Shown piece after piece: positions 8,079-61,464 of a stretch of DNA of 64,000 bases (the first letter of the stretch is position 1; the number at the start of each line of letters is the position of its first letter). Position numbers and translations under genes: made by a program. The stretch lies in IMG/VR virus record IMGVR_UViG_3300043399_000272, positions 186,001 to 250,000 of that record. The stretch is one strand, 5' to 3'. Below the pieces are notes generated by a model, which did no database searches, was not told the origin of the DNA, and saw nothing but the letters and a program-made list of their open reading frames with translations.

Positions 8079-8754
8079 AACGAAACACAGTTGCGAATTC
8101 TGCAACCGAACATTCGTCAGAGAAAAAACTCTGTTCACCCACATGTGTGAGACAAAGAATAGATGGTTGTCAAAAGATAAAATTGCAAATAGAATAGGAT
8201 TTCAAAGTTTCGTTCAATTTTATAAAAAACATTCTGCTGCTAAAAAGACAAAAACATATGATGAATTCATTCGTAGTCCATACTACACAGCTTTTGTAAA
8301 GTTTGGAAATTATTGTAGTGATATCAATGCTATCAACATTTCTCGTTTTGTTGATTGGTTATTAGCAGAACAAGTGTCAATTGATAATTGGAATAGTGAT
8401 AAAGTATATACTAGGTATTTGATCGAATATCTTAGAAAAGAAGATCCAATGGATGCTATACATCGTAGTGTAGAAACGTCAATAGAATTAGTAAAATCTG
8501 AAGGTATTCTTCCTAAAGACTTGTTGAGATTCGGTAATACAAACAAGATTTGTTATGCAATAACTACTGGTAAGATTAGCCCTTGGATGTTGTATCAAAG
8601 TAAAAGTGGCCCTAAGTTTTTAGACACGTTACACCCTGACCAAGTTAAATTCATTATAGATTATATTGATCCAGAGCAATGGGCACTAAAATTTCACAGA
8701 GAGCCGGAAAATGTCAGAGCAGTCAAAGAAATCCTTGATGTTGGGGGGTATTGA
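8056..8754 (+). CDS. hypothetical protein with N-terminal Zn finger
   Basis: CEFC-x12-HMC. Confidence 0.65.
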   Translation: MKKTEEIETKHSCEFCNRTFVREKTLFTHMCETKNRWLSKDKIANRIGFQSFVQFYKKHSAAKKTKTYDEFIRSPYYTAFVKFGNYCSDINAINISRFVDWLLAEQVSIDNWNSDKVYTRYLIEYLRKEDPMDAIHRSVETSIELVKSEGILPKDLLRFGNTNKICYAITTGKISPWMLYQSKSGPKFLDTLHPDQVKFIIDYIDPEQWALKFHREPENVRAVKEILDVGGY

Positions 8755-8965
8755 TATTAATCATGATTATAGAGTAAGAATACCCTTTACAGTAGGGTTC
8801 ATGAGTGACGGCGAAATAAATATGTGGAATGAAACATGTGCTAGAGCAATCGAGATGTTCGGATTGCCGGGTGACAAATACACATGTAGATTTACTAAAG
8901 AAGCGATTGAGTTTTGGTTCTTAGAAGAAAAAGATGCTATGATTTTTGAGTTGACTTGTGGATAA
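8711..8965 (+). CDS. array member (LRW-motif family)
   Basis: EMFGLPGDKY...FWFLEEKDAMIFELTCG. Confidence 0.7.
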   Translation: MSEQSKKSLMLGGIDINHDYRVRIPFTVGFMSDGEINMWNETCARAIEMFGLPGDKYTCRFTKEAIEFWFLEEKDAMIFELTCG

Positions 8966-9218
8966 GTGTTTAGAGTTTATATTGCCTAGCGGAGCAGCAG
9001 GTATGGCAGCCGGCATGACTCGTCAAGCTATAGGTAAAAAAATCAGAAAATTACAAGAAGATAAAAAAATAGGTCAGTATAAAACTAAAACGACAGGATA
9101 TAGATTTAAGGTATGGTTTGAGAATGAAATTGACTACACTACTTTTTTCCTTGTTTGGGAAGCCATTAACTCTTGGCATAAACCTAAAATCATTGAAGAA
9201 GATTACGATCCGAATTAA
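8958..9218 (+). CDS. array member (LRW-motif family, extended C-terminus)
   Basis: VWFENEIDYTTFFLVW. Confidence 0.65.
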   Translation: MDKCLEFILPSGAAGMAAGMTRQAIGKKIRKLQEDKKIGQYKTKTTGYRFKVWFENEIDYTTFFLVWEAINSWHKPKIIEEDYDPN

Positions 9219-9621
9219 AGCTCTTATAAGAATATTAAAAGCAAATCGCAAACTCAAAAAGAGTGGTTACAATAATTGGGCACATTATAAACATAACCGT
9301 GACCCCGATGTCGAAAGGTATGCTAATTGCATAGATGACTTCTACAAGGGTTATCCATATATCTATGCTTGCCCAAACCCAAACCACTATGCATATCAAC
9401 ACATAGCCGATTATGGACCAGGTGGTGACATATATGGGTTTAATGAGATAGAATTTTGGTGTCACGAAAAAATAAGGTGGAACTTTCGTTGTGACATGCA
9501 TAGAGTTTATGAGAATCAATGGGGAAAAATTGAGTTCAATGATATCGGAGGTTATGATAGAATATACTTTGCTTTTAAACGTGAACAAGATTTTACACAC
9601 TTTTTATTGCGATGGGCCTAA
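9118..9621 (+). CDS. array member (LRW-motif family); true start may be TTG at 9193
   Basis: IEFWCHE...YFAFKREQDFTHFLLRWA. Confidence 0.7.
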   Translation: MRMKLTTLLFSLFGKPLTLGINLKSLKKITIRIKALIRILKANRKLKKSGYNNWAHYKHNRDPDVERYANCIDDFYKGYPYIYACPNPNHYAYQHIADYGPGGDIYGFNEIEFWCHEKIRWNFRCDMHRVYENQWGKIEFNDIGGYDRIYFAFKREQDFTHFLLRWA

Positions 9622-9854
9622 AAAGAATATACATAATGTATCATACACCTAGATCGATGGAAGTTCTTTCATGGTTTTATGATACATTCGGTGAACCTCA
9701 GGAATGGGGAGGTATAATGTCAGAGCCTGTTCAATTGAAAAGTGGATATCAGTGGGCCAATGGTCAACATTCTACTAATTATCATGATGAAGCTAGTCCA
9801 TGTATTTGGTGTACAGAACAAGCGTTTATGATGTATTCTCTAAGGTGGTTATAA
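9612..9854 (+). CDS. array member (LRW-motif family)
   Basis: WFYDTFGEP...EQAFMMYSLRWL. Confidence 0.7.
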   Translation: MGLKRIYIMYHTPRSMEVLSWFYDTFGEPQEWGGIMSEPVQLKSGYQWANGQHSTNYHDEASPCIWCTEQAFMMYSLRWL

Positions 9855-10108
9855 TGGAACAAGGTAGCTTTACATATAAAACAACTAATTACTATGGTAG
9901 TCAACGAAAGATTCACATCGTATCTTGGAAAGGTAAGGGTGAAGTTGACGGGGATGAAATCCGAAAGTGGTGTATTGAAAACTTCGGAAATCCAGGTTAT
10001 CAGGAAGAACATTCTCAAGCTCGATGGCTAGATGATATTAAAGATTCGGGTGAAATCTATCTGTGTAAAGATGAAGATTTGACCTTTTTCTTACTCAAGT
10101 GGACATGA
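9854..10108 (+). CDS. array member (LRW-motif family)
   Basis: KWCIENFGNPG...IYLCKDEDLTFFLLKWT; TAATG overlap with previous stop. Confidence 0.75.
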   Translation: MEQGSFTYKTTNYYGSQRKIHIVSWKGKGEVDGDEIRKWCIENFGNPGYQEEHSQARWLDDIKDSGEIYLCKDEDLTFFLLKWT

Positions 10109-10314
10109 TGTACGATGATTTGACCCATAGGGTATTTCTAAAATGTCCAACTACAGACACAGATACAGTTGACAGGTGGTGTTACGAACATTTTGGTGAA
10201 CAGGGTGACAAATGGGATGCTTGGTTCGCAGATGATAGTCTCTGGAATTATGACCAAATTTATGCTTTCGTTAACCACGAAGATGCAGTACTTTTTACTC
10301 TAACTTGGGTATGA
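10105..10314 (+). CDS. array member (LRW-motif family)
   Basis: RWCYEHFGEQGDKW...YAFVNHEDAVLFTLTWV. Confidence 0.75.
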   Translation: MMYDDLTHRVFLKCPTTDTDTVDRWCYEHFGEQGDKWDAWFADDSLWNYDQIYAFVNHEDAVLFTLTWV

Positions 10315-10544
10315 GAAGATTACATTTTGATGGCTCTACTTGGCATGATACCAAACCCGGTTGGCATGAAATTGAATTGAATTTGAACGGTCAACCAAAA
10401 CGCTATCGTGAAATACTAGAATGGCTGTATAATACTATAGACAAGCCGGAAAGGCATTGTAGGTGGTTCCAAACGTCTGTTGGAATCAAAATTAAATTTA
10501 GGTACGAACGAGATTTTATTATCGCAACATTGAGGTGGACATGA
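10311..10544 (+). CDS. array member (LRW-motif family)
   Basis: EWLYNTI...IKFRYERDFIIATLRWT. Confidence 0.75.
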   Translation: MRRLHFDGSTWHDTKPGWHEIELNLNGQPKRYREILEWLYNTIDKPERHCRWFQTSVGIKIKFRYERDFIIATLRWT

Positions 10545-10894
10545 GAGTAGGTGTTTGGTATCGTACAGAATTACAACAACCCCCTAAGTCAGGTTACTAC
10601 CTTAGCTACAGAGGATGGGGTATCGCTGGCAAGGCAGATGACGACAGCGATTGGGGTTATGTCTATTACGATAAGAAAATAAATGAGTGGCGTGATTATC
10701 AAAATGTTAGCAGTAGCTATGCTATTGTCTATTACTGGACTGACGCTACGCCTGATGATTGGGTAAATCAAGACCCACCCGGTGTCACATTACATAAAGT
10801 AAAAGAAGAACACAATGTAGCACTGGAAGATGCGTGGAAGAAAGTTCAGGAGGCAATCGACCAGTACAACATGATTAAAGAGTTGGTGCGATGA
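10541..10894 (+). CDS. unrelated small protein inside the array (DUF551-like W..PP.SGYYL pattern)
   Basis: Coupled ATGA start; lacks the LRW motif. Confidence 0.6.
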   Translation: MRVGVWYRTELQQPPKSGYYLSYRGWGIAGKADDDSDWGYVYYDKKINEWRDYQNVSSSYAIVYYWTDATPDDWVNQDPPGVTLHKVKEEHNVALEDAWKKVQEAIDQYNMIKELVR

Positions 10895-11265
10895 CAATAC
10901 AATTACACGACTATCAATTGTGCGTTTTAGAACACTTAAAGGGATGGAAGCCGGGCGAAATGATGCTTATCTCTACTCCTAGACAAACTGGTAAAACTTA
11001 TCTCAATCAATTATTCGGTAAAATGAGTAACAGACAAATTTTTATGATGGGACCAGAACCTAAGTATAAATTCAGTCGTGCCAACTGGTATCAAGCAGAA
11101 TTTGACTGGCGAAAGTATGATGAAGTTGAAGAATGGTGCGAACAACAGTTTGGGCCGCACCCACAGAGACCAGATGCGTGGAGTCGCTGGTGGCATAAGT
11201 TTGAGAATAGCATTCTGTTCCGTGACGAAAAAGACTATGTATTGTTCATGTTGAGGTGGTCGTGA
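10891..11265 (+). CDS. array member with terminase-like P-loop fragment at N-terminus
   Basis: LHDYQ...PRQTGKT then EWCEQQFG...ILFRDEKDYVLFMLRWS. Confidence 0.75.
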   Translation: MTIQLHDYQLCVLEHLKGWKPGEMMLISTPRQTGKTYLNQLFGKMSNRQIFMMGPEPKYKFSRANWYQAEFDWRKYDEVEEWCEQQFGPHPQRPDAWSRWWHKFENSILFRDEKDYVLFMLRWS

Positions 11266-11507
11266 TGTTTATTCACACATACCAACAACAGGAGGATTGG
11301 AGAGATCCCGTACCCTGGTTTGTTGCTGCATTTACGACACCTAAGGAAAATCGTAAAGAGATTACCAAATGGTGTTACAAAACTTTTGGTGCCCCTAGTA
11401 TGAATCATCTTACTAAACAGATTCGTTGGAAAGATAGTATTCAATACGGTGAAATATATTTCAGTAATCAAAAAGACCTGGAGTGGTTTGTACTGAGGTG
11501 GTCATGA
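11265..11507 (+). CDS. array member (LRW-motif family)
   Basis: KWCYKTFG...IYFSNQKDLEWFVLRWS. Confidence 0.75.
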   Translation: MFIHTYQQQEDWRDPVPWFVAAFTTPKENRKEITKWCYKTFGAPSMNHLTKQIRWKDSIQYGEIYFSNQKDLEWFVLRWS

Positions 11508-11710
11508 CTATGCACAAAGTTGTTTATGCTCAAACTACAGATGGCACACTGTCTGCGTATCAGCGTAGCTATAAAGACCACCTAGTAGACGAATGGCTTA
11601 AAGAATATTGTAAAGGCCCTTACTATCATAACCCGGGCTGGACTACAGAAAAGTTTATTGAGTTTGAACGCAATGAAGATGCGTTTTGGTTTGCGTTAAG
11701 GTGGTGTTGA
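11504..11710 (+). CDS. array member (LRW-motif family)
   Basis: EWLKEYC...IEFERNEDAFWFALRWC. Confidence 0.75.
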   Translation: MTMHKVVYAQTTDGTLSAYQRSYKDHLVDEWLKEYCKGPYYHNPGWTTEKFIEFERNEDAFWFALRWC

Positions 11711-11952
11711 TGAATAACATTTCAGTTCATAATCTTATCGACAATCATATTATCAACTATCTTAGAGAGATTGATAAGCCCAGTAGAACATATTGGCCCT
11801 ATCTAATTCAGCTAAAATCTTGGGCTGACGTAAGCCCTGCTGAAAGATTCTGCTATACCCACTTCAAGAGTCGAAACTGGAGAAATATCAGCGCCGATTT
11901 TTATTTCAAACATAAAGAAGATTATGAATGGTTTATGTTAAGGTGGTCTTGA
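11710..11952 (+). CDS. array member (LRW-motif family)
   Basis: RFCYTHF...FYFKHKEDYEWFMLRWS. Confidence 0.75.
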   Translation: MNNISVHNLIDNHIINYLREIDKPSRTYWPYLIQLKSWADVSPAERFCYTHFKSRNWRNISADFYFKHKEDYEWFMLRWS

Positions 11953-12131
11953 TGGAAACAAATATTGTATATAGAGCTATGGCAGCAGGCAACTGGGATG
12001 AAAAAGTCGAATGGTGCAGAGAAAACTTGTATCCTGGAGGACACTATGAACCAAAATGGTATATGCGTTATCCTTGGATAGAATTTGATGATGAAAAAGA
12101 ATATATCTGGTTCAAGTTGAGGTGGGAATGA
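11952..12131 (+). CDS. array member (LRW-motif family)
   Basis: EWCRENL...IEFDDEKEYIWFKLRWE. Confidence 0.75.
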   Translation: METNIVYRAMAAGNWDEKVEWCRENLYPGGHYEPKWYMRYPWIEFDDEKEYIWFKLRWE

Positions 12132-12328
12132 GCCTAATTGACGATATCGATGATTTGATGTGGCCAGTATTTGTCAAGTTTGATAAAGCATTGGTTCCTG
12201 ACGAATGGTACGAACTAGATTGCTGGTGTAATCAGCAGTTTGGTAAAGATGGTTGGTGGCTTGAGAAAGGTGTCATGCGTCTTAGAAAAGAAGAACATGC
12301 TACAATATTCTTACTAAGATGGGGTTAA
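12128..12328 (+). CDS. array member (LRW-motif family)
   Basis: CWCNQQFGKDGWW...RLRKEEHATIFLLRWG. Confidence 0.75.
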   Translation: MSLIDDIDDLMWPVFVKFDKALVPDEWYELDCWCNQQFGKDGWWLEKGVMRLRKEEHATIFLLRWG

Positions 12329-12528
12329 TAGTTACAAAGTACATTTATGAAAATTTTGATACCGACGCCGCGGTAGAGTGGGCCATAGAAAATTGTCCTA
12401 GTTTTGAAAAGTACATGATAATAGAACTAGACTGGGAAGAAAAAGAAGATTTGGGTTGTTGGTTTAAATTTGAGGTATATTTTGGTGACGAAAAAGATGC
12501 AATGTTTTATTCATTGAGGTGGGCGTAA
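12319..12528 (+). CDS. array member (LRW-motif family)
   Basis: EWAIENC...VYFGDEKDAMFYSLRWA. Confidence 0.7.
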   Translation: MGLIVTKYIYENFDTDAAVEWAIENCPSFEKYMIIELDWEEKEDLGCWFKFEVYFGDEKDAMFYSLRWA

Positions 12529-12747
12529 TTGATTGAAGTGACATTAGAAGATAAATTACCTAGTGAGTTTTTAGAAATTGTTAGAGAAATTAAAGACAAA
12601 GGGTATGTTCAGGGAACTGACTTTGACTTTGCTTACCATCCACCCAAATTTGATAACTTTTCAGGGGATGCAGTGTATAATAGATGCGTCATATTCAAAT
12701 TTTATAAAGAAGAAATTGCAACATGGTTCAACCTAAAGTATCTTTGA
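12529..12747 (+). CDS. array member (LRW-motif family, LKY variant)
   Basis: FKFYKEEIATWFNLKYL; TTG start right after previous stop. Confidence 0.7.
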   Translation: MIEVTLEDKLPSEFLEIVREIKDKGYVQGTDFDFAYHPPKFDNFSGDAVYNRCVIFKFYKEEIATWFNLKYL

Positions 12748-12995
12748 TGGATGAAATAATCAAAGAAAAATTAGAAGAAATGGAAAAAAGTATAGACAAC
12801 GATGTGATGAGGTCTTGTCTAGTCGAAGGTGGATGGACAGAAATTAAATTTCATTATCACAGTGGTAAACACGCAGTTGATGTGTTAGAATGGTGCGGTG
12901 AAACGTTTAAAGAAAATCAATGGTCGAGACTGAATGGTTACTTTGTATTTCGCAAGAAAAAAGATGCTGAATGGTTTATGTTAAGGTGGCTATGA
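12747..12995 (+). CDS. array member with acidic N-terminal helix
   Basis: EEMEKSIDNDVMRSCL...EWCGETF...FVFRKKKDAEWFMLRWL. Confidence 0.75.
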   Translation: MDEIIKEKLEEMEKSIDNDVMRSCLVEGGWTEIKFHYHSGKHAVDVLEWCGETFKENQWSRLNGYFVFRKKKDAEWFMLRWL

Positions 12996-13867: not shown

Positions 13868-14100
13868 GAAGTTTTCAACCAATGATTGAGTATGTTGATG
13901 TGGTTCGTAATAACACGGATTACACCTCAAAGAAAACGTATATCCCTAAGCCCAATGATTCAGATGAACACATTAGATGGTGCCGCAGAAATTTAGGAGC
14001 TAGGGGTGATGGTTGGGACTTTGCAGGTTCTGGTAAAACGTTGACTATTTTTATTTGGTCACACAAATTGCAATTTATGTATGAAATGTGGCAACAATAG
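13825..14100 (+). CDS. array member (divergent)
   Basis: RWCRRNLGARGDGWDF...FMYEMW. Confidence 0.65.
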   Translation: MVRRKVYMAAIKGLGSFQPMIEYVDVVRNNTDYTSKKTYIPKPNDSDEHIRWCRRNLGARGDGWDFAGSGKTLTIFIWSHKLQFMYEMWQQ

Positions 14101-14924
14101 TGAAGAATAAAATAGGTATTGATATCGGCAAAACCAAAACTGAATGCTGTGTCATTTCACTTAACAACGAAGTGTTGTTTCGTGAAAGATTACCTACAGG
14201 TACCGTCTTTAATGAAATAAAAGAATTGTATCAAAAGGCTATCAAATACACAGATACAACGAATCACACCATCGGTGTGTGTATGCCGGGAAAATTAAGC
14301 AACGTTAGTGGGTTAATGATTAATTCTAGTATTGAATTTTTGAATAATACTGACTTTGTAAAAAATCTACAACTTGTTTTAAACCATGATTTTAAAACAG
14401 CAAATGATTCACAATGTTTTGCATTAGCAGAAGCATTACTAGGGGCAGGGAAAAATTATAATATTGTTTATGGCTTAATATTGGGCACTGGCGTGGGCGG
14501 GGGCATCGTAATAAACGGTAGAAGTACACAAAGCGAGTTTGGTCACACTAGTCTAGATAGTTCAAACAAAATACTATGTAGATGTAAGAGAATTGGTTGC
14601 GTTGAAACATGGCTCAGTGGCTCAGGTGTCGATGTATGGGCAAAAGAATTGTTAGGGATCGATATGTCTACTGTAGACTATATGAAAGATCCCAAAGTAA
14701 AGCAGATATACTTTGAAAAGTTTGGATTAGCTCTATCTAATTTAATTCAAACAGTTAATCCAGAATGTATTGTAATCGGTGGTGGAATCAGTAATAATAG
14801 TGAAGTATATTCCGTAGGTGTAGAGCGCATCAAACAAAAGTTGTTTGATGATGAATTGTCTATACCTGTAGTCAAAGCAGAACTAGGAGATAGTGCAGGC
14901 GTTATAGGTGCTGCACTTTTATAA
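14088..14924 (+). CDS. ROK-family sugar kinase
   Basis: GIDIGKT, NDSQCFALAE, LGTGVGGG, EFGH, CxC..GCxE Zn site, IGGG, AGVIGAA. Confidence 0.88.
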   Translation: MATIVKNKIGIDIGKTKTECCVISLNNEVLFRERLPTGTVFNEIKELYQKAIKYTDTTNHTIGVCMPGKLSNVSGLMINSSIEFLNNTDFVKNLQLVLNHDFKTANDSQCFALAEALLGAGKNYNIVYGLILGTGVGGGIVINGRSTQSEFGHTSLDSSNKILCRCKRIGCVETWLSGSGVDVWAKELLGIDMSTVDYMKDPKVKQIYFEKFGLALSNLIQTVNPECIVIGGGISNNSEVYSVGVERIKQKLFDDELSIPVVKAELGDSAGVIGAALL

Positions 14925-14926
14925 TT

Positions 14927-15496
14927 ATGGCAAATGATATAATGATTGACCTTGAAACACTTGACACGACACCGTATTGTGTAATTCTCACAATCGGTGC
15001 AGTCAGGTTCGATCCTAGAGGTCAAGGAGTGGTTGAACGATTAGAACTACGTCCTACGATTGAGGATCAAACAGAAATTCATAATAGAATAATTGATGAT
15101 GACACATTACGGTGGTGGTCTACACAGAGCCCTGATGCACTTGAAGAAGCATTGGGAGACAGGGGACGTACATCATTTAGAGAGTGCATGGAGGCCCTTT
15201 ATAAGTTTTGTTGGAACCGTCGTGCTGTTTGGGCTAATGGTTCTGCATTTGATATCGTAGCATGTGAAACAGGTATGCGTCAGACATTGACTGATTATCC
15301 TAATCCTATTCCGTGGCCATTCTGGACAGTTAGAGATACACGAACACTGTATGAAGTAGCAGGTGTTAGTTTGAAGGATAAGAAATACGGTAGCAAAACA
15401 ACGCACAAAGCAGTCGAAGATGCAGAACACCAAGCGATTGTTGTGCAAGACGCATACATGAAATTGATGAAAGCAGGATTGGCAACACCGCGATGA
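14927..15496 (+). CDS. DEDDh 3'-5' exonuclease (Rv2179c/exodeoxyribonuclease VIII-like)
   Basis: MIDLETL, WANGSAFD, RDTRT, HKAVEDA. Confidence 0.85.
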   Translation: MANDIMIDLETLDTTPYCVILTIGAVRFDPRGQGVVERLELRPTIEDQTEIHNRIIDDDTLRWWSTQSPDALEEALGDRGRTSFRECMEALYKFCWNRRAVWANGSAFDIVACETGMRQTLTDYPNPIPWPFWTVRDTRTLYEVAGVSLKDKKYGSKTTHKAVEDAEHQAIVVQDAYMKLMKAGLATPR

Positions 15497-18250: not shown

Positions 18251-19222
18251 ATGTTCGACATTCTAGGTTTAATTCCGGGTAAAAAGAAGCATACAAACAG
18301 CGGGTGGACTAGCTTTAACGCAGTCTGCTGTAGCCATCGCGGCCATAATCCAGACAGAAGAATGCGAGGCGGGCTACGTATTGATGGAAATAATTGGGTG
18401 ATGCATTGCTTCAACTGCGGATATAGTTGTAGCTTTATGCTCGGTAGGAGTATAAATGCAAAAACCAGACAGTTCCTTATTTGGTGCGGAGTAGATAGTG
18501 AACAAGTACAAAAATGGAGTTTAGAAAGCCTTCAGAAAAAAGATTTGCTTCAACTATACCTAGAACAGAAAAAACGCTTTACGATTAAATTTAAATCTAA
18601 GAGGCTGCCGGACAATTCTGAACAAATTACTGAACAAGGTACTCATAAGTTCTATGTAGATTATTTGAAAAAGCGCAAAATAGACTATGAAAAATATGTT
18701 CTCTATTGCAACCCTTCCGGTGGTCAACGTAAAAAATATGGTATTATAATTCCCTACACATATAAAGGAAAAATAGTAGGACACACTACAAGGTTTCTGG
18801 ATAACAAAAGTCCTAAATATATCAATGAACAACAACAAGGCTATGTCTTTAATATTGACATGCAGAAACCAGAATGGAATGTATGCATTGTAACTGAAGG
18901 TATTTTTGATGCAATGGCAATCGATGGTGTTGCACTGATGCATGACGATATTAGTAATGAGCAAGCAATACTACTAAGTACACTAAACAGAAAAATTATT
19001 GTAGTGCCGGATTTTGACAAAACTGGTTTGAAAATTACAGATAGGGCGTTAGAACTTGGATATCATGTCAGCTTACCCAACTGGGGTCCTGATATTAAAG
19101 ACGTTAACGATGCAGTAGTAAAGTATGGTAAGCTCCCTACATTATTGGCAATACTTGAAAACGCAACGATGAGCAAGATAAAAATTGAAATGAGGAAGAA
19201 ACAGATTGCTAAAGGATTATAA
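18251..19222 (+). CDS. DNA primase (gp61-like)
   Basis: Zn ribbon CC...HCFNCG, KYIN, TOPRIM EGIFDA, PDFD, KDVND. Confidence 0.85.
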   Translation: MFDILGLIPGKKKHTNSGWTSFNAVCCSHRGHNPDRRMRGGLRIDGNNWVMHCFNCGYSCSFMLGRSINAKTRQFLIWCGVDSEQVQKWSLESLQKKDLLQLYLEQKKRFTIKFKSKRLPDNSEQITEQGTHKFYVDYLKKRKIDYEKYVLYCNPSGGQRKKYGIIIPYTYKGKIVGHTTRFLDNKSPKYINEQQQGYVFNIDMQKPEWNVCIVTEGIFDAMAIDGVALMHDDISNEQAILLSTLNRKIIVVPDFDKTGLKITDRALELGYHVSLPNWGPDIKDVNDAVVKYGKLPTLLAILENATMSKIKIEMRKKQIAKGL

Positions 19223-20633
19223 TATTGATGTACAGACCCTATTTCTGCGTATGTTAGTAACAAACGCAGAATTGTTTACAAGGGTTACAAACATCATGAA
19301 TCCACAAAACTTTGATAAGTCTCTCAGACCTGTGGCTGAGCTACTTAAGGAGCACAGTGAAAAATACAGTGTGTTACCTTCTCCTGAACAAATCAAAGCA
19401 ACGACTGGAGTTGAAATTGATGTAGTACCAGAGTTAAACGAAGGTCACTCTGAATGGTTTTTAGATGAATTTGAAAAATTTACTAAGCGCCAAGAACTTG
19501 AACGTGCTATCCTTCAAGCAGCCGATATGCTTGAAAAGGGTGATTACGGTCCTGTTGAAAAGATGATTAAGGACGCTGTACAAATCAGTTTACAAAAAGA
19601 CATGGGTACAGATTACTTTGCTGACCCCAAGACACGAATTAATAAGTATTTCAATGCAGGTGGGCAGGTTAGTACAGGATGGCCACAACTTGACAGACTA
19701 CTATATGGTGGTTTTAGTCGGGGTGAACTAAACATCTTTGCAGGTGGTTCTGGTTCAGGTAAGTCTTTGGTTATGATGAATATTGCATTGAACTGGTTGA
19801 ACGTAGGTCTAAGTGGTGTTTACGTTTCACTAGAACTTTCAGAAGAACTAACATCATTGCGTACTGATGCGATGTTGACCAGTATGAGTACCAAAGATAT
19901 TCGCAAAGATATTGATTCTGCTGAATTGAAGATTAAAATGATGAGTAAGAAGTCTGGTCAATATCGAGTTAAAGGTATGCCTGCACAATCTAACGTTAAC
20001 GATATTCGTGCTTATTTGAAAGAAGTACAAATTCAGACAGGAATCAAAATTGATTTTGTGATGATTGATTATTTGGATCTGGTTATGCCCGTGTCTGTTA
20101 AAGTAAATCCCAATGATCAGTTTATCAAAGACAAGTATGTTTCAGAAGAATTGCGTAACTTAGCAAAAGAGCTAGGCATTTTAATGGTAACTGCATCTCA
20201 GTTGAATCGTAGTGCTGTAGAGGAAATTGAGTTTGATCATAGTCACATTGCAGGTGGCATTTCAAAGATTAACACTGCGGATAACGTCTTTGGTATATAT
20301 CGTACTAGAAGTATGATGGAGCGAGGAAAGTATCAGATTCAATGTATGAAATCTCGTAGTAGTACAGGCGTAGGTCAAAAAATCGATTTAGACTATAATA
20401 TGGAAACTATGCGTATTACAGATGATGATCCTGAAGGATACGCAGACCAGCAAGCAAAGTATAAACAGCAACCTAGTGCAAATGACATAATGAGTAAATT
20501 GAAGCCGCAAAGCACTATAACAACAAACGATCAGGTTCAGTCTTTTGTCCAACCAGAAGCAAAACGAGTAGTAGGTGATGTTCAGGGTGCTAAATTAAAA
20601 GCACTATTGAATACGATTCAAAAAGATAAATAA
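19206..20633 (+). CDS. replicative DnaB-like helicase (gp41-like)
   Basis: STGW, GGSGSGKS, SLEL, IDYLD, TASQLNR, KSR. Confidence 0.9.
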   Translation: MLKDYNIDVQTLFLRMLVTNAELFTRVTNIMNPQNFDKSLRPVAELLKEHSEKYSVLPSPEQIKATTGVEIDVVPELNEGHSEWFLDEFEKFTKRQELERAILQAADMLEKGDYGPVEKMIKDAVQISLQKDMGTDYFADPKTRINKYFNAGGQVSTGWPQLDRLLYGGFSRGELNIFAGGSGSGKSLVMMNIALNWLNVGLSGVYVSLELSEELTSLRTDAMLTSMSTKDIRKDIDSAELKIKMMSKKSGQYRVKGMPAQSNVNDIRAYLKEVQIQTGIKIDFVMIDYLDLVMPVSVKVNPNDQFIKDKYVSEELRNLAKELGILMVTASQLNRSAVEEIEFDHSHIAGGISKINTADNVFGIYRTRSMMERGKYQIQCMKSRSSTGVGQKIDLDYNMETMRITDDDPEGYADQQAKYKQQPSANDIMSKLKPQSTITTNDQVQSFVQPEAKRVVGDVQGAKLKALLNTIQKDK

Positions 20634-25463: not shown

Positions 25464-25556
25464 ACAGATAAATATATAATACACTCTTAATTCTGAGAGT
25501 TTATGCGGTCCCCGCCGCGTAGTGGCTAGAACCCACAACTAACAAGGAGAAAACAA

Positions 25557-26417
25557 ATGGGACGCCCAATTAAAGCAAATAAATGGAATGGATCAACCAA
25601 CATCGACTATGGTTATCCTAACGACGGTACTACCGATAATGGCTACGATACAGATAAACCAGGTGTAGTAATCGGAGACCCTGAGGATAGATGGGAAATT
25701 GTACAATCATATGTATGTATTAAAGTAAATGGATTAGGAACTATCACTACTGATTCCACTGCCACCACAGTTACCGGTACAGGTACAAACTTTACTGGAC
25801 TACTTTTAGGCGGTGCTAAACTTTACACATCTGCAGGAGTGTATATCGGTACCGTTGATTCAGTAACCGATGACGGTGAACTAGAATTAGCAGCAAACGC
25901 AGAAGTGGATGTTACTGACAGTGCCTTCTACTATGGTGATGCAGACAGTGAAGGTATAATTCTTCGTCAAAAAGGTAAAAGAAAGTTTTTAGTAGCTAGA
26001 AGGGACAATATCCAAGATGAATATATCGTAGCAGGCAATACATATTTCATTGATACTGTCGGTAATACTGATTGGGAAGCATTAGGAGCCGGAGTAGGCG
26101 CAGGGTACGGAAAAGTGTTTACTGCTACTGCAAACGGTACAGGTCTTGGAACAGACGGCTCAGTGTACAATGTAGGTATATGCTCATTAGTCGATACCAC
26201 TGATTCAACTGAATTAGAGCCCGGAGAAATGTACATTTCTTACTACGATCCAGTACAAGACGATACTTATGCTGCAAGTGAACTTACTAACCATTGGTTA
26301 AGACCGTGGGGTGCTCAAGCTTCCGCAACCAAGTATGTTGCACAATTGACTGACTCTAGTTCAACACCTGATCCAGCTACAGGATATACAAGTGTTGACG
26401 TTAATGATTGGGATTAA
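25557..26417 (+). CDS. putative virion structural protein
   Basis: Late promoter GATAAATA at 25467, strong SD aaggag, VTGTGTNF motif, terminator downstream. Confidence 0.6.
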   Translation: MGRPIKANKWNGSTNIDYGYPNDGTTDNGYDTDKPGVVIGDPEDRWEIVQSYVCIKVNGLGTITTDSTATTVTGTGTNFTGLLLGGAKLYTSAGVYIGTVDSVTDDGELELAANAEVDVTDSAFYYGDADSEGIILRQKGKRKFLVARRDNIQDEYIVAGNTYFIDTVGNTDWEALGAGVGAGYGKVFTATANGTGLGTDGSVYNVGICSLVDTTDSTELEPGEMYISYYDPVQDDTYAASELTNHWLRPWGAQASATKYVAQLTDSSSTPDPATGYTSVDVNDWD

Positions 26418-34696: not shown

Positions 34697-37600
34697 ATGG
34701 CACTAGTATCACCAGGCGTAGAAGTTACAATTATTGATGAAAGTCAATATTTACCTCCTGCCTCATCATCTGTCCCCTTCGTTCTATTAGCAACTGCACA
34801 AAATAAAGCGAACGCTACCGGGACAGCAATTGCGCCAGCGACTACAGCCGCTAATGCAAACAAATTATACACAGTAACAAGTCAGCGTGACTTAGTAAAC
34901 TTATTCGGTAATCCGTTCTTTTACAAAACTTCGAATAATACCCCTATTCAGGGATATGAACTAAATGAATATGGTCTTTTGGCTGCATACTCATTGCTAG
35001 GTGCTACTAATCGTTGCTTTATCTTACGTGCTGACATTGACTTGGCTAGCTTAGTAGGTACATTATCTCGTCCAACAGGAGCTCCTGCTGACGGTACTTA
35101 TTGGTTAGATACAACAACTACTACCTGGGGTATCTATGAGTTTAATCAATCTACTGGTAAATTCACTAATAAACTACCACTAGTTATTACTGACGCTAAC
35201 CAAATGTCTGGCGGCGCGCCACTAACATCATTGGGTACGATCGGATCATACGCACAATATGCTGAATTGAATTCAGAAACTGGTGTTTATAGTAACCCTA
35301 CATTCTTCTATAAGAACATGAACAACTCATGGGTTGTCGTAGGTAGTCAAGACTGGAAAAATTCAATACCTACTGTAACTACTGTTGCTCCTACAGGTGC
35401 ATTACTTAGTGGAACAGAATACTCATTCACTATTACGTTTAATGGAACTACCGGCAATGCTCAAGTAATAACGTTTGACGGAGCTACTGGCATTTACGCT
35501 ATTCAGAATGCAATTCACAATGCAGGTGGATATTTAGATGCTCAAGTTGTAAACAACACACTTCAAATTTATTACTCTAATCCAGATCCTGATTCTTTCA
35601 TCAATATTACTGACGGAGCAAATACACCATTAGCTACATTATTTGGAGCAGCAGCACCAGTTAATCTCAACTATTTTAACCCATTGATGGTTACTAGTCC
35701 ATCATCTCAGATGCCTTTATGGACAGTTGGCCAATTAACTTCTAGACCTACTGGATCTGTTTGGGTTAAATCAAGTGTATCTGGTAATGGTTTGAATCCT
35801 GCTCTCAACGTTTATCGTAGTAGTTTAGCTAGTTGGGTAGGCGTAAATGTATCTTATTATGACTTATCTGGAAATGCAATCTTTGCGTTAGATTCAACTG
35901 GTGGCCAATCAATACCAGTAGGCACTGTTATCATGTCTGGTGCACCTGCAGGCTTATTAAGAAGAAAAGCTACAGGTAGCACAATTGTAACTGGCTCTAC
36001 TACTTCGCCAGAACCAACTGTAGGATCCGTATTGTATGCTACTGTATCAACTCCGGGTGTTCCTGCTGCATCGGTCCATCAAATTACTATGACCGGTTCA
36101 ACAGGATCTTCGTTTGTAGTTGATTGGCTTGCAGCCGATATCCCTAATACAGATGCATATTTGACTACTAATGGAGCAATTCAAATCGAACACACCGCCG
36201 GCGGCGACATCTATTTAACTGATGTTAATCCTACAACAGGTATTAGTTCGGGACTTCTTGCTGAAATAGGTTTTGACACAGTATCTAACCCAGATGTACT
36301 AGTTGGTTTTGCTCTAAGTAACTACAACACATTCCAGTACACTGACATTGGCGGCGCAGTATTCTCTGTAACTATTGAAAGAGATTACTATTCTGTTTCT
36401 GCTAACTTAGGATCCGGTAACTACTCTAGTTCTGGTACTACTCAGGTAGTAATACCAGGAACTGATTTAGGTGGTTCATCTCCTGCAAATGATATTACAA
36501 TTAACATTGAAGGTGGTTCATCTCCTACTTGGACATTCATGTCCGGCACACCTAACATTAAATATGTTTCAACTTTATCTAATTGGGAATGGTTGTCCTA
36601 CACACCAAATGAAGGTCCACTAGCAACAAACCCAGCAAACGGAACTAATTGGTACTACAGTACAATTTCTGAAGTTGACATTATGGTAAACCAAAATGGT
36701 GCTTGGAAAGGGTATCGTGAAGTATCTTACGATAGTAATGGTCACCCCCTACCAAGCGGTGTTAACACAACTGATCCTAACGGTCCGATTCTTGCAACCG
36801 ATGAGCCAACTACTCAGAGTGACGGTACTGCTCTAGTGTACGGTGATCTATGGATTGACACTAATGATTTAGAAAACTATCCAATGATTTATCGTTGGCA
36901 ATTGGTTGATGGTCAAGATCAATGGGTACAAATCGACAACACAGACCAAGTCAGTCAAAACGGTGTTCTATTTGCAGACGCACGTTGGGGCACTTCTGGT
37001 AGCGTAGATCCAGTAAATGATCCGATACCTGAAATCGTTGATTTGCTAGAAAGCAATTATCTAGATTTAGATGCACCTAATCCAGTTGCGTATCCACAAG
37101 GTATGTTGTTATGGAATACCCGTCGTTCTGGATATAACGTAAAGCAGTTTAGAACTAATTACTTTACAAGTGCTAACTATCCAGGTGAATCATTACCTAC
37201 ATTCTCATACACATGGGTAAGTGTAAGTGGATTGAATACTAATGGATCAGCTTACATGGGCCGCAAAGCTCAGCGTAATATGGTTGTACAAGCCATGAAA
37301 GCTGCAATTGGTACTAACCAGACAATTCGTGAAGAAGATACATTCTTCAACTTAATGGCTACACCAAACTATCCTGAGTTGCAACCTGATATGGTCGTTC
37401 TAAACAATGACCGTAACAACACTGCTTACATCATTGGTGATACACCATTGCGCTTACCAGATCAAGCTACTGCATTGACTAACTGGGCTACAAACGCTGC
37501 AGGAGCATCAAGCACAGGTGAAGATGGATTAGTTACACGTAACGAATATATGGGTCTATTCTATCCAAGCGGTATCACTGTAAACCCAACAGATGGTTCT

Positions 37601-38206
37601 GCAGTGGTGGTACCTGCTTCACATATGATGCTTCGTACATTCTTACGCAATGATACTATTGCTTATCCTTGGTTAGCACCAGCTGGTACTCGTAGAGGTA
37701 ATATCGACAATGCAACAAACATTGGTTATTTAGACGCAACTACTGGCGAGTTTGTAGCTATCAAGAATCGTTTAGGAATTCGTGACGTATTGTACACAAA
37801 CCAGATCAACCCACTAGCATTCTTCACAGGTGTTGGCTTGTTGAACTATGGTAATAAGAACAGCAAGGATACACAGTCTGCACTAGATCGTATCAACGTA
37901 GCTCGTTTAGTTTGCTATGTACGTGAAAGACTGCAAGTTCTTGCTCGTCCGTTCGTATTCGAACCTAACGATTCTGTAACACGTAATCAAATTGCAGGTG
38001 TGGTACAGTCATTGTTTATAGATTTAGTCGCTAAACGTGGCCTATATGACTACCTAGTTGTATGTGATGAATCTAACAATACTCCTGCACGTATCGACAG
38101 AAATGAATTGTGGATCGATGTTGCGATTGAGCCAGTGAAAGCTGCTGAATTCATCTACATCCCAGTTCGTGTCCTTAACACAGGGGAAATTCAAGGAGCC
38201 CAATAA
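34697..38206 (+). CDS. tail sheath protein (gp18-like), large
   Basis: MALVSPGVEVTIIDES; PWLAPAG..RG; RINVARL; FEPND; C-terminal P.KAAEFIYI. Confidence 0.93.
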   Translation: MALVSPGVEVTIIDESQYLPPASSSVPFVLLATAQNKANATGTAIAPATTAANANKLYTVTSQRDLVNLFGNPFFYKTSNNTPIQGYELNEYGLLAAYSLLGATNRCFILRADIDLASLVGTLSRPTGAPADGTYWLDTTTTTWGIYEFNQSTGKFTNKLPLVITDANQMSGGAPLTSLGTIGSYAQYAELNSETGVYSNPTFFYKNMNNSWVVVGSQDWKNSIPTVTTVAPTGALLSGTEYSFTITFNGTTGNAQVITFDGATGIYAIQNAIHNAGGYLDAQVVNNTLQIYYSNPDPDSFINITDGANTPLATLFGAAAPVNLNYFNPLMVTSPSSQMPLWTVGQLTSRPTGSVWVKSSVSGNGLNPALNVYRSSLASWVGVNVSYYDLSGNAIFALDSTGGQSIPVGTVIMSGAPAGLLRRKATGSTIVTGSTTSPEPTVGSVLYATVSTPGVPAASVHQITMTGSTGSSFVVDWLAADIPNTDAYLTTNGAIQIEHTAGGDIYLTDVNPTTGISSGLLAEIGFDTVSNPDVLVGFALSNYNTFQYTDIGGAVFSVTIERDYYSVSANLGSGNYSSSGTTQVVIPGTDLGGSSPANDITINIEGGSSPTWTFMSGTPNIKYVSTLSNWEWLSYTPNEGPLATNPANGTNWYYSTISEVDIMVNQNGAWKGYREVSYDSNGHPLPSGVNTTDPNGPILATDEPTTQSDGTALVYGDLWIDTNDLENYPMIYRWQLVDGQDQWVQIDNTDQVSQNGVLFADARWGTSGSVDPVNDPIPEIVDLLESNYLDLDAPNPVAYPQGMLLWNTRRSGYNVKQFRTNYFTSANYPGESLPTFSYTWVSVSGLNTNGSAYMGRKAQRNMVVQAMKAAIGTNQTIREEDTFFNLMATPNYPELQPDMVVLNNDRNNTAYIIGDTPLRLPDQATALTNWATNAAGASSTGEDGLVTRNEYMGLFYPSGITVNPTDGSAVVVPASHMMLRTFLRNDTIAYPWLAPAGTRRGNIDNATNIGYLDATTGEFVAIKNRLGIRDVLYTNQINPLAFFTGVGLLNYGNKNSKDTQSALDRINVARLVCYVRERLQVLARPFVFEPNDSVTRNQIAGVVQSLFIDLVAKRGLYDYLVVCDESNNTPARIDRNELWIDVAIEPVKAAEFIYIPVRVLNTGEIQGAQ

Positions 38207-59190: not shown

Positions 59191-61464
59191 ATGAATTCAC
59201 CCGAAATTGAAGTAATTATTGAGCAAGCATTAAATTTGGCTAAAGAGAGGTCACACAAGTATTGTACACTTGAACATTTATTGCTTGCACTGATTACTCA
59301 TCAGCCCTTTAAAAAGTGCTTAGATAGTTTTGGTGCAGATGTTGAAACACTAACCAAAGAAGTTACTCATTATATTGACACACTACATGCCATTGTAGTT
59401 GATGTTAGTAACGGAGAAGAAGTGCATCCTCGCAAAACTAATTCTCTCGAAAGAGTCATGAACCGAAGCATTACACAAGTATTGTTTACTGGTCGTAAAA
59501 TGGTAACTACTATTGATTTGTATCTGAGTATTTCTAGCGAAACCAACAGTCATGCACATTATTACTTGCTGAAATATGGTATCACAAAGCAAGAATTTGT
59601 AGCACACTGGCAAAAGAATTATAAAAATCAGGATGCAGAAACTAAACTTACTGATTCGCAAGCATCTGAAATTCTCGAAGAATACACAGTTAATCTTAGC
59701 GAACTTGCACGTAACCATAAACTAGAACCGCTTGTGGGTCGTAGTGAAGAACTGGACGACATTATAAATGTGCTAGCTAAGAGATTCAAATCAAACGTAC
59801 TAATGGTGGGGGATCCAGGTGTAGGCAAGACCGCTATCGTAGAGGGACTAGCACAGCGTATTGCTGATGGTAAAGTACCTGAGTTTCTTAAGGACCATGA
59901 AGTATATTCAGTAGAAGTAGGTAACTTGCTTGCAGGTTCAAAGTATCGTGGAGATTTCGAAGAAAAGATCAAAGTAATCATTGAAGCACTGATTACAAAG
60001 AAAAAGGCTGTGTTGTTTATCGATGAAGCACATACTATGAAAGGTAGCGGGTCTTCAAATAACGGCAGTGTTGACTTTGCTAATATGATTAAGCCTGCAA
60101 TCACAAAGGGTAATTTGAAAGTTATCGCAAGCACTACATGGGAAGAATTCTATGAGTCCTTCGAAAAGGATCGTGCATTGATGCGTAGATTCTATCGTGT
60201 GGGTGTAGATGAACCTGATCGTGATTCTACGGTTCGCATTTTGACAGGGTTAAGTACTCGGTTGAATGACTTCCATGATGTGGATATTTCTCCTGACGCT
60301 ATCACTGCGGCAGTAGATAGCGCAATTAGGTATTTGCATGACCGTAAAAACCCTGATAAGTCTATCGACTTGCTAGACGCCGCATGTGCAAAACAGCGTG
60401 TAGCTGATAACAAGGGTGCAGTCATTACTAAAGAAATGGTGTATGACCAAGTTGAACGTATTGCAGGAGTTCCAGCAGATAAACTCAAGGATCAAACAGT
60501 TGATAAGATTCAACTATTGGAATCTAATATCAAAGATAAATTGTATGGGCAAGAAGATACGGTAGATAAAGTTTTGGAACGTATTTATGTTAGCTTTGCT
60601 GGCATCGGAAATCAAAGTAAACCTATTGCAAGTTTCTTATTCTTGGGCCCTACTGGTACTGGTAAAACAGAATTGGCTAGACTGTTAAGTAAGAACCTAG
60701 ATATGCCGCTAATCAAATATGACATGTCTGAATATTCTGAGAAATTCAACGTTAGTGCTTTGCTAGGTGCACCTCCCGGATATGTTGGGTTTGGAGAAGG
60801 TAGTCTTGGTGGCGGCAAACTAATTAACGACTTGAGTAAAAATCCGCACTCTATCTTGTTGTTTGATGAAGTAGAAAAAGCACACCCTGATATCTTTAAT
60901 ATTTTCTTGCAATTGCTTGACGACGGTAAAGTTACTGGTACTAATGGTAAGTCAGTAAATGCAAAGAACTGTATTGTTATTATGACTAGTAACTTGGGAA
61001 GTCAAGATGCAGAAAGAAACAATATTGGCTTTGGCAGTCAAGAAAAATCAGGTGAAGATGATAAAGCCTTGAAGGACTTCTTCAAGCCTGAATTCAGAAA
61101 TCGTATTGACTTGATTTGTAAATTCGGTAAACTTGATATGCTAGCAATCAAGAAAATTGTCATTAAATTTACTGATGATTTGAAGAAGTCATTGAAAGAT
61201 ACCCATGATATTACTCTTAATTTGCGTGAATCAGTTGTTGAATATCTCGCTGAAAAGGGTTATGATAAGAAGATGGGTGCAAGACCACTGGCTCGAAAGA
61301 TCGATGAATTGATTAGGGTTCCATTGTCAAAGAAGATTCTTTTTGAACGTATTAAAAACGCAACTATTAACGTTAGCGTCGGGGATGATGACAAGATTGA
61401 ATTCGAAATTCAACAAAAATTAACTGCTACGGTGAATGAAGATGGGATTATTGAAGTCAGTTGA
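59191..61464 (+). CDS. clpA: ClpA/ClpB-family AAA+ chaperone
   Basis: Clp N-domain, GDPGVGKT, GPTGTGKT, FDEVEKAH, IGF loop, GARPL; no ClpB middle coiled-coil. Confidence 0.9.
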   Translation: MNSPEIEVIIEQALNLAKERSHKYCTLEHLLLALITHQPFKKCLDSFGADVETLTKEVTHYIDTLHAIVVDVSNGEEVHPRKTNSLERVMNRSITQVLFTGRKMVTTIDLYLSISSETNSHAHYYLLKYGITKQEFVAHWQKNYKNQDAETKLTDSQASEILEEYTVNLSELARNHKLEPLVGRSEELDDIINVLAKRFKSNVLMVGDPGVGKTAIVEGLAQRIADGKVPEFLKDHEVYSVEVGNLLAGSKYRGDFEEKIKVIIEALITKKKAVLFIDEAHTMKGSGSSNNGSVDFANMIKPAITKGNLKVIASTTWEEFYESFEKDRALMRRFYRVGVDEPDRDSTVRILTGLSTRLNDFHDVDISPDAITAAVDSAIRYLHDRKNPDKSIDLLDAACAKQRVADNKGAVITKEMVYDQVERIAGVPADKLKDQTVDKIQLLESNIKDKLYGQEDTVDKVLERIYVSFAGIGNQSKPIASFLFLGPTGTGKTELARLLSKNLDMPLIKYDMSEYSEKFNVSALLGAPPGYVGFGEGSLGGGKLINDLSKNPHSILLFDEVEKAHPDIFNIFLQLLDDGKVTGTNGKSVNAKNCIVIMTSNLGSQDAERNNIGFGSQEKSGEDDKALKDFFKPEFRNRIDLICKFGKLDMLAIKKIVIKFTDDLKKSLKDTHDITLNLRESVVEYLAEKGYDKKMGARPLARKIDELIRVPLSKKILFERIKNATINVSVGDDDKIEFEIQQKLTATVNEDGIIEVS

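Follow-up and report, generated by a model that had tools for sequence, protein, structure and literature searches.

Small phage proteins joining captured motif peptides to a C-terminal module predicted to fold

Here we show that a 124-residue phage protein (P0001) carrying a Walker A-like motif is not a broken terminase, but belongs to a large, undescribed family that joins short copies of the most conserved motifs of core phage proteins (helicase/terminase P-loop, ribonucleotide reductase loop, capsid peptide) to a small domain predicted to fold. The captured pieces, here termed cassettes, share no synonymous-site similarity with their parent genes and evolve under purifying selection, so they matter as peptides rather than as DNA. 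An earlier note, based on sequence alone, had described this protein as an array member in which a terminase-like fragment of about 40 residues is fused to a normal LRW module without the remainder of an ATPase, and had proposed that the captured fragment could act as a decoy or mimic for terminase-sensing Avs/AVAST proteins. What the note saw in the sequence is real. Its interpretation is supported only in part: a captured and displayed fragment is supported and can be generalised, while the terminase identity is not supported and the Avs-decoy role, which is inference only, is unlikely for a 40-residue piece predicted to be unfolded.

Sequence data

The window analysed is a stretch of 64,000 nucleotides (bases 186001-250000) of the 260 kb IMG/VR virus record IMGVR_UViG_3300043399_000272 (37.8% GC, CheckV completeness 74%), which originates from a freshwater metagenome. 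Features discussed below are summarized in Table 1.

Table 1. Coordinates of the features discussed. Positions are those of the window unless stated otherwise; residues are those of the encoded protein.
Position	Strand	Feature	Residues	Supporting observations
10891..11265	+	ORF for P0001 (124 aa plus stop); the ATG start overlaps the stop of the upstream ORF (ATGA)	1-124	Identical protein on a second IMG/VR contig (L011)
10903..11016	+	P-loop cassette: LHDYQ (residues 5-9), a predicted helix, the strand MMLIS, Walker A, and the start of a helix	5-42	Aligns over its whole length to the N-terminal profile of 40 homologues (E=1.9e-22)
10975..10998	+	Walker A-like octet TPRQTGKT	29-36	G34, K35 and S/T36 at least 90% conserved in 108 homologues but not invariant
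11026..11061	+	Degenerate remnant of the NrdA-loop cassette, SNRQIFMMGPEP; typical family members have NNLCKEI.LPMKPEP here	46-57	Alignment to the N-terminal profile
11062..11262	+	C-terminal LRW module: predicted strand 67-70, helix 73-87, strands 100-104 and 107-110, helix 113-123	58-124	Family HMM E=2.8e-31; matches five paralogues in the same array
8711..12995	+	Array of at least 12 tightly packed small genes ending in an LRW-type module, P0001 being one of them		Family HMM at E<1e-3 for ORFs starting at 8711, 9800, 10099, 10305, 10891, 11256, 11483, 11686, 11928, 12122, 12319 and 12723; paralogy runs through the C-terminal modules only
19689..19784	+	Walker A region of the phage's own DnaB-like helicase gp41 (gene 19206..20633), the best-scoring full-length relative of the P-loop cassette in this genome	162-193	Profile search and hhalign (see text)
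180526..182073 of the genome record (G000)		The phage's own large terminase (TerL), with WDYQ-x17-PRQTGKS		Residues 55-87 resemble the P-loop cassette more weakly than gp41

Results

The ORF encoding P0001 is open, and its product carries DYQ (residues 7-9), a 20-residue spacer, and PRQTGKT (residues 30-36), followed by the LRW module with no Walker B or other ATPase motif. The composite pattern YQ-x(14-24)-RQxGK[ST] is expected 0.0014 times in the 146,429 residues of all six-frame ORFs of the genome and was never seen in 300 shuffled proteomes, yet it occurs twice in the real ORFs (in the phage's own TerL and in this ORF), and chance is therefore excluded. Nor is the gene an assembly artefact, given that identical pieces covering 10910-11059 and 11007-11241 occur in contigs from an independent wastewater study. 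The runs labelled RNA-Seq among these data are probably DNA and, taken as contigs, say nothing about expression. Within the window, P0001 is the only array member with a recognisable payload.

One part of the earlier description requires correction, in that the N-terminal piece is not a private capture of this array member but the conserved N-terminus of a large family. A search with the whole protein found 402 homologues at E<=1, of 105-170 aa and covering 86-100% of the query, while a search of 1.84 billion representative proteins with the C-terminal module alone found 155 clusters at 50% identity, all of 52-156 aa and with the module always at the C-terminus. The homologues come from uncultured jumbo T4-superfamily myoviruses, and the nearest cultured terminase is that of Pseudomonas phage PA5oct, at 50% identity. 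The earlier note had asked whether homologous arrays repeatedly capture the fragment, and the same P-loop piece was found at the N-terminus of 107 of the 120 best homologues, with the consensus YQQALLDKVSGGFKxGEMxIISAGRQTGKS followed by NNLCKEI.LPMKPEP. By contrast, megablast of the array and tblastn of P0001 against 50,697 cultured-phage records found nothing, even at E<=10.

The C-terminal module of about 65 residues (consensus KYKFSRANWY..W-C-x-QQFGPHP..PDAWSRW..FRDEKDY..LRW) has 19 invariant columns in a sample of 30 homologues, and P0001 is a clear member of this unnamed LRW-module family. AlphaFold2 predicts the module as strand-helix-strand-strand-helix with pLDDT 76-90. Foldseek against the PDB gave no match at E<=0.001, an exhaustive structural aligner gave a best Z of 5.2, to small KH/ACT-like alpha/beta domains and within background, BFVD returned only uncharacterised phage proteins, and a protein atlas showed no named neighbours. 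No Pfam, PHROG or NCBIfam family covers the module; for P0001, Pfam gave only AAA_14 at E=0.07, PHROGs gave nothing, and NCBIfam and PADLOC gave nothing meaningful.

In contrast to the module, the N-terminus is conserved in sequence but predicted to have no fold of its own. In two models, computed with 108 or 60 aligned sequences, residues 1-57 of P0001 (pLDDT below 56) and residues 1-70 of a typical member remain below pLDDT 58, with the P-loop itself below 50 and only one short helix predicted after YQ. A region that is conserved yet unstructured is what one expects of peptide motifs that fold on a partner. Prediction of a four-copy homo-oligomer gave no verdict and is not evidence either way.

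To identify the source of the N-terminal pieces, a profile of 40 N-termini was scored without filters against all 1,475 ORFs of the genome. The best non-self hits were the phage's own gp41 (E=5.7e-4) and its ribonucleotide reductase NrdA (residues 437-454, HTIYQSNLCCEILLPTKP, E=5.6e-3), whereas TerL ranked only fifth (E=1.7). It is important to note that this genome is 74% complete, and some cassette sources may lie in the missing part. Comparison by hhalign gave 92.7% probability (P=4.4e-7) against a gp41 alignment and 58.9% (P=9.3e-5, over 47 columns) against a TerL alignment, although both alignments are shallow (Neff 1.6-2.1). In six-frame scans of five records, Pfam DnaB_C (PF03796) picked up the family genes in two of them (G006 and G007) at 12-13 bits, below its 27-bit cut-off and without hitting P0001 on its own, while Terminase_6N (PF03237) found only the true TerL genes even at E<=10. 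Pfam scans of the 40 members individually gave DnaB_C in 13, AAA_14 in 12, KaiC in 10 and Ribonuc_red_lgC in 10 (best E=2.5e-4), with no terminase family.

Single-sequence comparisons were weak throughout. P0001 alone scores poorly against every parent protein, and BLASTP of its N-terminus against the phage's own TerL gave E=2.7 with 33% identity over 30 residues, which rules out a recent copy of the phage's own terminase. Against solved structures the profile found only generic P-loops (E>=0.013), with T4 gp17 not among the 60 listed best matches, and tblastn of a typical N-terminus against cultured phages gave weak hits split between T7-like primase/helicases (best E=0.04) and large terminases (E=0.3-8), the latter including those of Campylobacter and Pelagibacter phages. 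We read the piece as a genuine Walker A strand-loop-helix that is statistically closer to the DnaB family, but whose YQ and RQxGK[ST] features are terminase-like; its origin is thus not resolved and may be chimeric.

Sister proteins carry other captured pieces in place of the P-loop. Some homologues carry a 40-50-residue copy of the conserved N-terminal segment (N-arm) of the major capsid protein: residues 8-48 of one such member (P0092) match residues 59-99 of the own capsid protein at E=6e-8, and Pfam Gp23 scores above its gathering cut-off in six of six capsid-carrying members tested (up to 45 bits, E=1e-11), always against model positions 1-57. In addition, tblastn of residues 1-70 of another member (P0195) hits 2,495 phage records, of which the 25 listed matches all lie in major head genes at 57-59% identity. 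Other members carry a capsid C-terminal strand (FYAPYIP, E=6.7e-3 against capsid residues 328-347), or a longer form of the catalytic Cys loop of NrdA that keeps both conserved strands (YQ.NLC.EI and LCTLG) while lacking the 11-residue variable loop between them. Chimeras are common (ex. NrdA plus capsid C-strand, or NLCNEI joined directly to VGVQPM).

Of the 150 listed representative clusters, 110 have an N-terminal extension of 12 residues or more, while 40 have almost none. Based on simple motif patterns, 23 of the 110 carry the NLC cassette, 21 the capsid N-arm, 17 a P-loop, 6 the capsid C-strand, and 55 no recognisable source, such that the apparent restriction to the most conserved motifs may be partly an ascertainment effect. 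A search among the ORFs of this genome found no source for further cassettes (TITVDLE, which resembled an exonuclease ExoI motif; YPKT..ALKKL; the DDIIRMID helix; TGFKSKK; and PNIVKFHK).

Capsid-type and P-loop-type genes occupy the same slot in a syntenic array of small genes, between a uvsW-like helicase and primase/gp41. This layout is found in the window and in three further loci (L007, L008 and L009), and gp41 lies downstream in 21 loci. Single genomes can hold two or three copies of different types. Within the window, Rfam found no intron, which argues against an intron-borne ORF, and a promoter scan over the array performed no better than shuffled sequence.

To discriminate between peptide- and DNA-level conservation, cassettes were compared with their cognate genes in a complete 364 kb relative (G001) that carries both. 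Amino-acid identity was 42-58%, but third-codon identity only 0.20-0.42. The capsid cassette is identical to its own capsid protein at 19/45 amino acids, with second codon positions 76% and third positions only 20% identical, and the NrdA and capsid C-strand cassettes behave alike. These are therefore old captures, and DNA-level roles (decoy sites for homing endonucleases, repair donors, recent or ongoing gene conversion) are rejected.

Across ten P-loop-type genes, synonymous sites are saturated, with pN/pS of 0.36/0.69 for the P-loop cassette, 0.29/0.73 for the NrdA (NLC) cassette, and 0.24/0.70 for the module. All three regions are thus under purifying selection, weakest in the P-loop. In 60 typical members the Walker A lysine is invariant and twelve further N-terminal positions are at least 90% conserved. 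The Walker A is nevertheless not sacrosanct: the closest homologue (P0002, 79% identical) has TSKT and has lost the glycine, while others have GIS (P0019) or GRS (L016 and P0095), and, given that the NrdA cassette of P0001 has also decayed, the P-loop may be drifting in this branch. Pairs of genes show discordant synonymous divergence between their N and C parts (ex. pS of 0.19 against 0.73), and cassettes and modules are therefore exchanged by recombination.

Discussion

The anatomy and evolution of the family, that is, a widespread and unannotated set of 52-170-residue proteins combining a conserved C-terminal module with N-terminal cassettes of 15-45 residues that are homologous to the most conserved segments of core phage proteins, occur in different combinations and are exchanged independently of the module, are demonstrated by the analyses above. 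The mechanism, including any binding, partner or effect on infection, is inferred. We propose that the module is a scaffold or effector and that the cassettes act as peptide mimics, which would compete with the nascent or unfolded forms of the parent proteins for a factor that recognises those segments (possibly a host immune sensor, a chaperone or a protease), thereby blunting recognition early in infection. Taken together with the anatomy, this explanation is tentative and falls somewhat short of being more likely than not. A precedent that a short capsid peptide is biologically active is provided by the T4 Gol peptide, which binds EF-Tu and is described as the most conserved part of gp23 (PMC3014915). 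However, known sensors of capsid peptides (Lit/Gol, as well as chaperone-based toxin-antitoxin systems) are activated by such peptides, so a mimic could trigger rather than block them.

A bolder form of this hypothesis, which we consider unlikely although it is not excluded, is that the family represents a new class of phage counter-defence, namely poly-motif decoys. In this view, a small scaffold would display strings of the peptide segments that the phage cannot change (capsid N-arm/Gol region, helicase or terminase P-loop, reductase catalytic loop) and that host sensors, immune chaperones or proteases use to detect nascent phage proteins. If made early, as its position among replication genes would suggest, it would saturate or misdirect those sensors, and the cassettes would be reshuffled among phages as the hosts' sensors change.

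Bacterial immune sensors are increasingly found to recognise conserved phage proteins (terminase, portal, capsid and replication proteins). A family of hundreds of phage proteins that copy such invariant segments, keep them under selection as peptides, and shuffle them as cassettes would be a natural catalogue of which phage segments matter to some recognition machinery, and would make the question of what the host sees directly testable, each cassette being a ready-made bait. Even if the decoy idea is wrong, the family is unusual in showing repeated capture of motif-sized pieces of essential genes into a small accessory protein, for which our literature searches found no description, and we regard it as lying outside the known kinds. 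It also shows that a Walker A-like motif in a small phage ORF can be a conserved feature without being an enzyme remnant.

The rival that survives best, though unlikely, is that the cassettes are evolutionary debris pasted into a plastic gene array by illegitimate recombination or break repair, and now serve only as a spacer or leader while all function lies in the LRW module. The array is indeed highly plastic, with shuffling of N and C parts and a variant contig lacking one member, many representatives have almost no N-terminal extension, some members have lost Walker A residues, and no structure is predicted in the region. Against this reading stand the constraint on the cassettes, which keep pN of 0.29-0.36 while synonymous sites are saturated, the conserved N-terminal positions, the pieces being in frame and in sense far more often than the one in six expected for random filler, their coincidence with the best-conserved motifs, and the removal of a variable loop from the NrdA piece.

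Less likely still, the cassettes may be strand-mimic peptides that modulate or poison the folding or assembly of the phage's own or a competitor's helicase, reductase or capsid. All identified cassettes are buried strand-turn elements of their parent folds (by inference in the case of the capsid), and the family is confined to phages that encode those parents. However, a mimic could not tell own proteins from a competitor's, because the motifs are nearly universal, and the cassettes are only partly identical to the cognate segments. Similarly doubtful is a minimal phosphate-binding protein, in which the strand-loop-helix would bind a nucleotide or nucleic acid, perhaps as an oligomer. Most members do have a canonical (A/G)xxxxGK(S/T), and a designed phosphate-loop protein (6c2u) is among the weak solved-structure matches (E=0.087), but there is no Walker B, the Walker A glycine or lysine is lost in several members, capsid-type cassettes replace the P-loop in the same slot, and no packing of the N-terminus is predicted. 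The terminase/Avs-decoy reading is the least likely, given that, despite the shared signature, the terminase identity fails the profile tests, Avs proteins are reported to bind the folded ATPase and nuclease domains, which a 40-residue piece predicted to be unfolded would mimic poorly, and sister proteins carry capsid or NrdA pieces instead, so that any function is not terminase-specific.

With respect to previously described systems, P0001 shares with the N-terminal ATPase domain of T4-type large terminases (gp17) a YQ motif 17-20 residues before a deviant Walker A, (S/P)RQxGK(T/S), but lacks the Walker B, catalytic glutamate, coupling motif and C-terminal nuclease, and is joined to an unrelated small domain. 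The family consensus resembles the H1 region of DnaB-family helicases (T4 gp41), with its preceding GG(F/L)xxG(E/D) strand, in the run L-D-x-L-x-G-G-F-x-x-G-E-hydrophobic strand-G-x-x-G-K-S, which is the best profile match in the own genome and with Pfam, but scores stay below the Pfam cut-off, P0001 on its own does not reach significance, the match ends about 10 residues after GKS, and motifs H1a, H2 (Walker B), H3 and H4 are absent. The protein thus fails membership of the terminase, DnaB and functional P-loop families, as only the Walker A segment is present in each case, and, judged from its sequence, it is not an ATPase.

The capsid cassette of the sister proteins (IVGVQPM region) is taken here to correspond to the Gol region of T4 gp23, whose peptide triggers the Lit protease through EF-Tu. 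In these proteins, however, the peptide is part of a separate gene product joined to the LRW module and encoded among DNA replication and recombination genes, which T4 expresses early, rather than within the capsid gene, and P0001 itself has the P-loop cassette instead. Phage anti-defence mimics and decoys (ex. Ocr as a DNA mimic, DSAD1 against DSR2) are likewise small accessory proteins of variable regions that work by resembling something the host recognises, but known examples mimic DNA or bind the sensor through a folded surface, and our literature searches found none described as a string of peptide motifs copied from the phage's own core proteins. Finally, laboratory-made P-loop prototypes (PDB 6c2u/6c2v) are also lone strand-(P-loop)-helix elements without the rest of an NTPase, but these are designed and shown to bind phosphate ligands, whereas here there is no evidence of binding and the element is replaceable by unrelated cassettes.

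Capsid-type and chimeric N-termini among the homologues

Sister genes of P0001, the 124-residue array protein, were found at six loci to carry a 40-50-residue copy of the N-terminal conserved segment of the major capsid protein (IVGVQPM region) in front of the same C-terminal module, with Pfam Gp23 scoring over its cut-off. This segment would correspond to the Gol region of T4 gp23. In a different, high-GC phage lineage, a 130-residue ORF joins the capsid N-terminal segment (E=4.7e-13 to the capsid protein of the phage studied here) to a degenerate WC..QQFG module, and sits inside an array of LRW-like genes. A third capsid-like fragment was detected in the complete 364 kb relative (G001), where it lies far from the array and has one in-frame TAA.

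Chimeric N-termini were also observed, in which the NrdA catalytic loop, with its variable loop absent, is joined directly to a capsid C-terminal strand (YYAPYMP). Other chimeras join NLCNEI to VGVQPM (homologue P0132), or GVQPM to an NPCGEI motif that looks like class II reductase (homologue P0225). Three further recurrent cassettes, for which no source has been identified, occur in the N-termini of homologues and loci P0127, P0139, P0153, P0222 and L024; P0134, P0168, L025 and L061; and P0124, P0131, P0162 and P0182. These are (G/K)YPKT(S/T)xALK(K/R)L, MTGFKSKKxM, and an amphipathic helix MKQDDIxRMIDxLKK. The closest homologue of P0001 (P0002, 79% identical) has serine in place of the Walker A glycine (PRQTSKT), while the same contig carries a second, typical copy.

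Locations of sister genes, related fragments and other features of the window
Location	Strand	Feature
L007:10001-10351		Sister gene with capsid N-terminal segment
L028:9836-10249		Sister gene with capsid N-terminal segment
L036:3162-3632		Sister gene with capsid N-terminal segment
L050:9857-10252		Sister gene with capsid N-terminal segment
L055:6252-6641		Sister gene with capsid N-terminal segment
L058:9932-10339		Sister gene with capsid N-terminal segment
L039:9881-10210		Chimeric N-terminus
L040		Chimeric N-terminus
L042		Chimeric N-terminus
L044		Chimeric N-terminus
L046		Chimeric N-terminus
L058:9379-9720		Chimeric N-terminus
L064:5235-5627		Capsid segment-module ORF of the high-GC lineage
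G001:C1:13417-13638 (locus L166)		Third capsid-like fragment
L009:10001-10375, L010:831-1205		P0002
L009:1728-2120		Second, typical copy on the contig of P0002
window 10104-10311		Segment skipped in a contig from the source sample
window 14088-15496	+	ROK-family homologue and Rv2179c-like exoribonuclease
window 25484-25559	+	Freshwater-2 RNA motif
window 34697-38206	+	Tail-sheath homologue
window 59191-61464	+	ClpA/ClpB-type double AAA+ protein

Other features of the array and the surrounding window

A contig from the source sample joins 10104 to 10311, skipping 206 bases, which is one whole array member (gene 10099..10314). Given that this contig also differs in several other letters, a co-occurring relative lacks that member, which suggests copy-number variation in the array. 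Directly after the array lie a homologue of ROK-family sugar kinases or regulators (E=1e-48) and an Rv2179c-like 3'-5' exoribonuclease (E=6e-33), both of which are unusual cargo for a T4-type replication region.

Elsewhere in the window, the phage encodes a 757-residue ClpA/ClpB-type double AAA+ protein with a Clp_N domain. While an unfoldase that reads exposed peptides is a conceivable partner for proteins with disordered N-termini, nothing in the present data links the two. The freshwater-2 RNA motif (66 bits against a gathering score of 49.9) is the only Rfam family found in the window. The tail-sheath homologue is very long (1,169 residues), and only its last 100 residues match Phage_sheath_1C.
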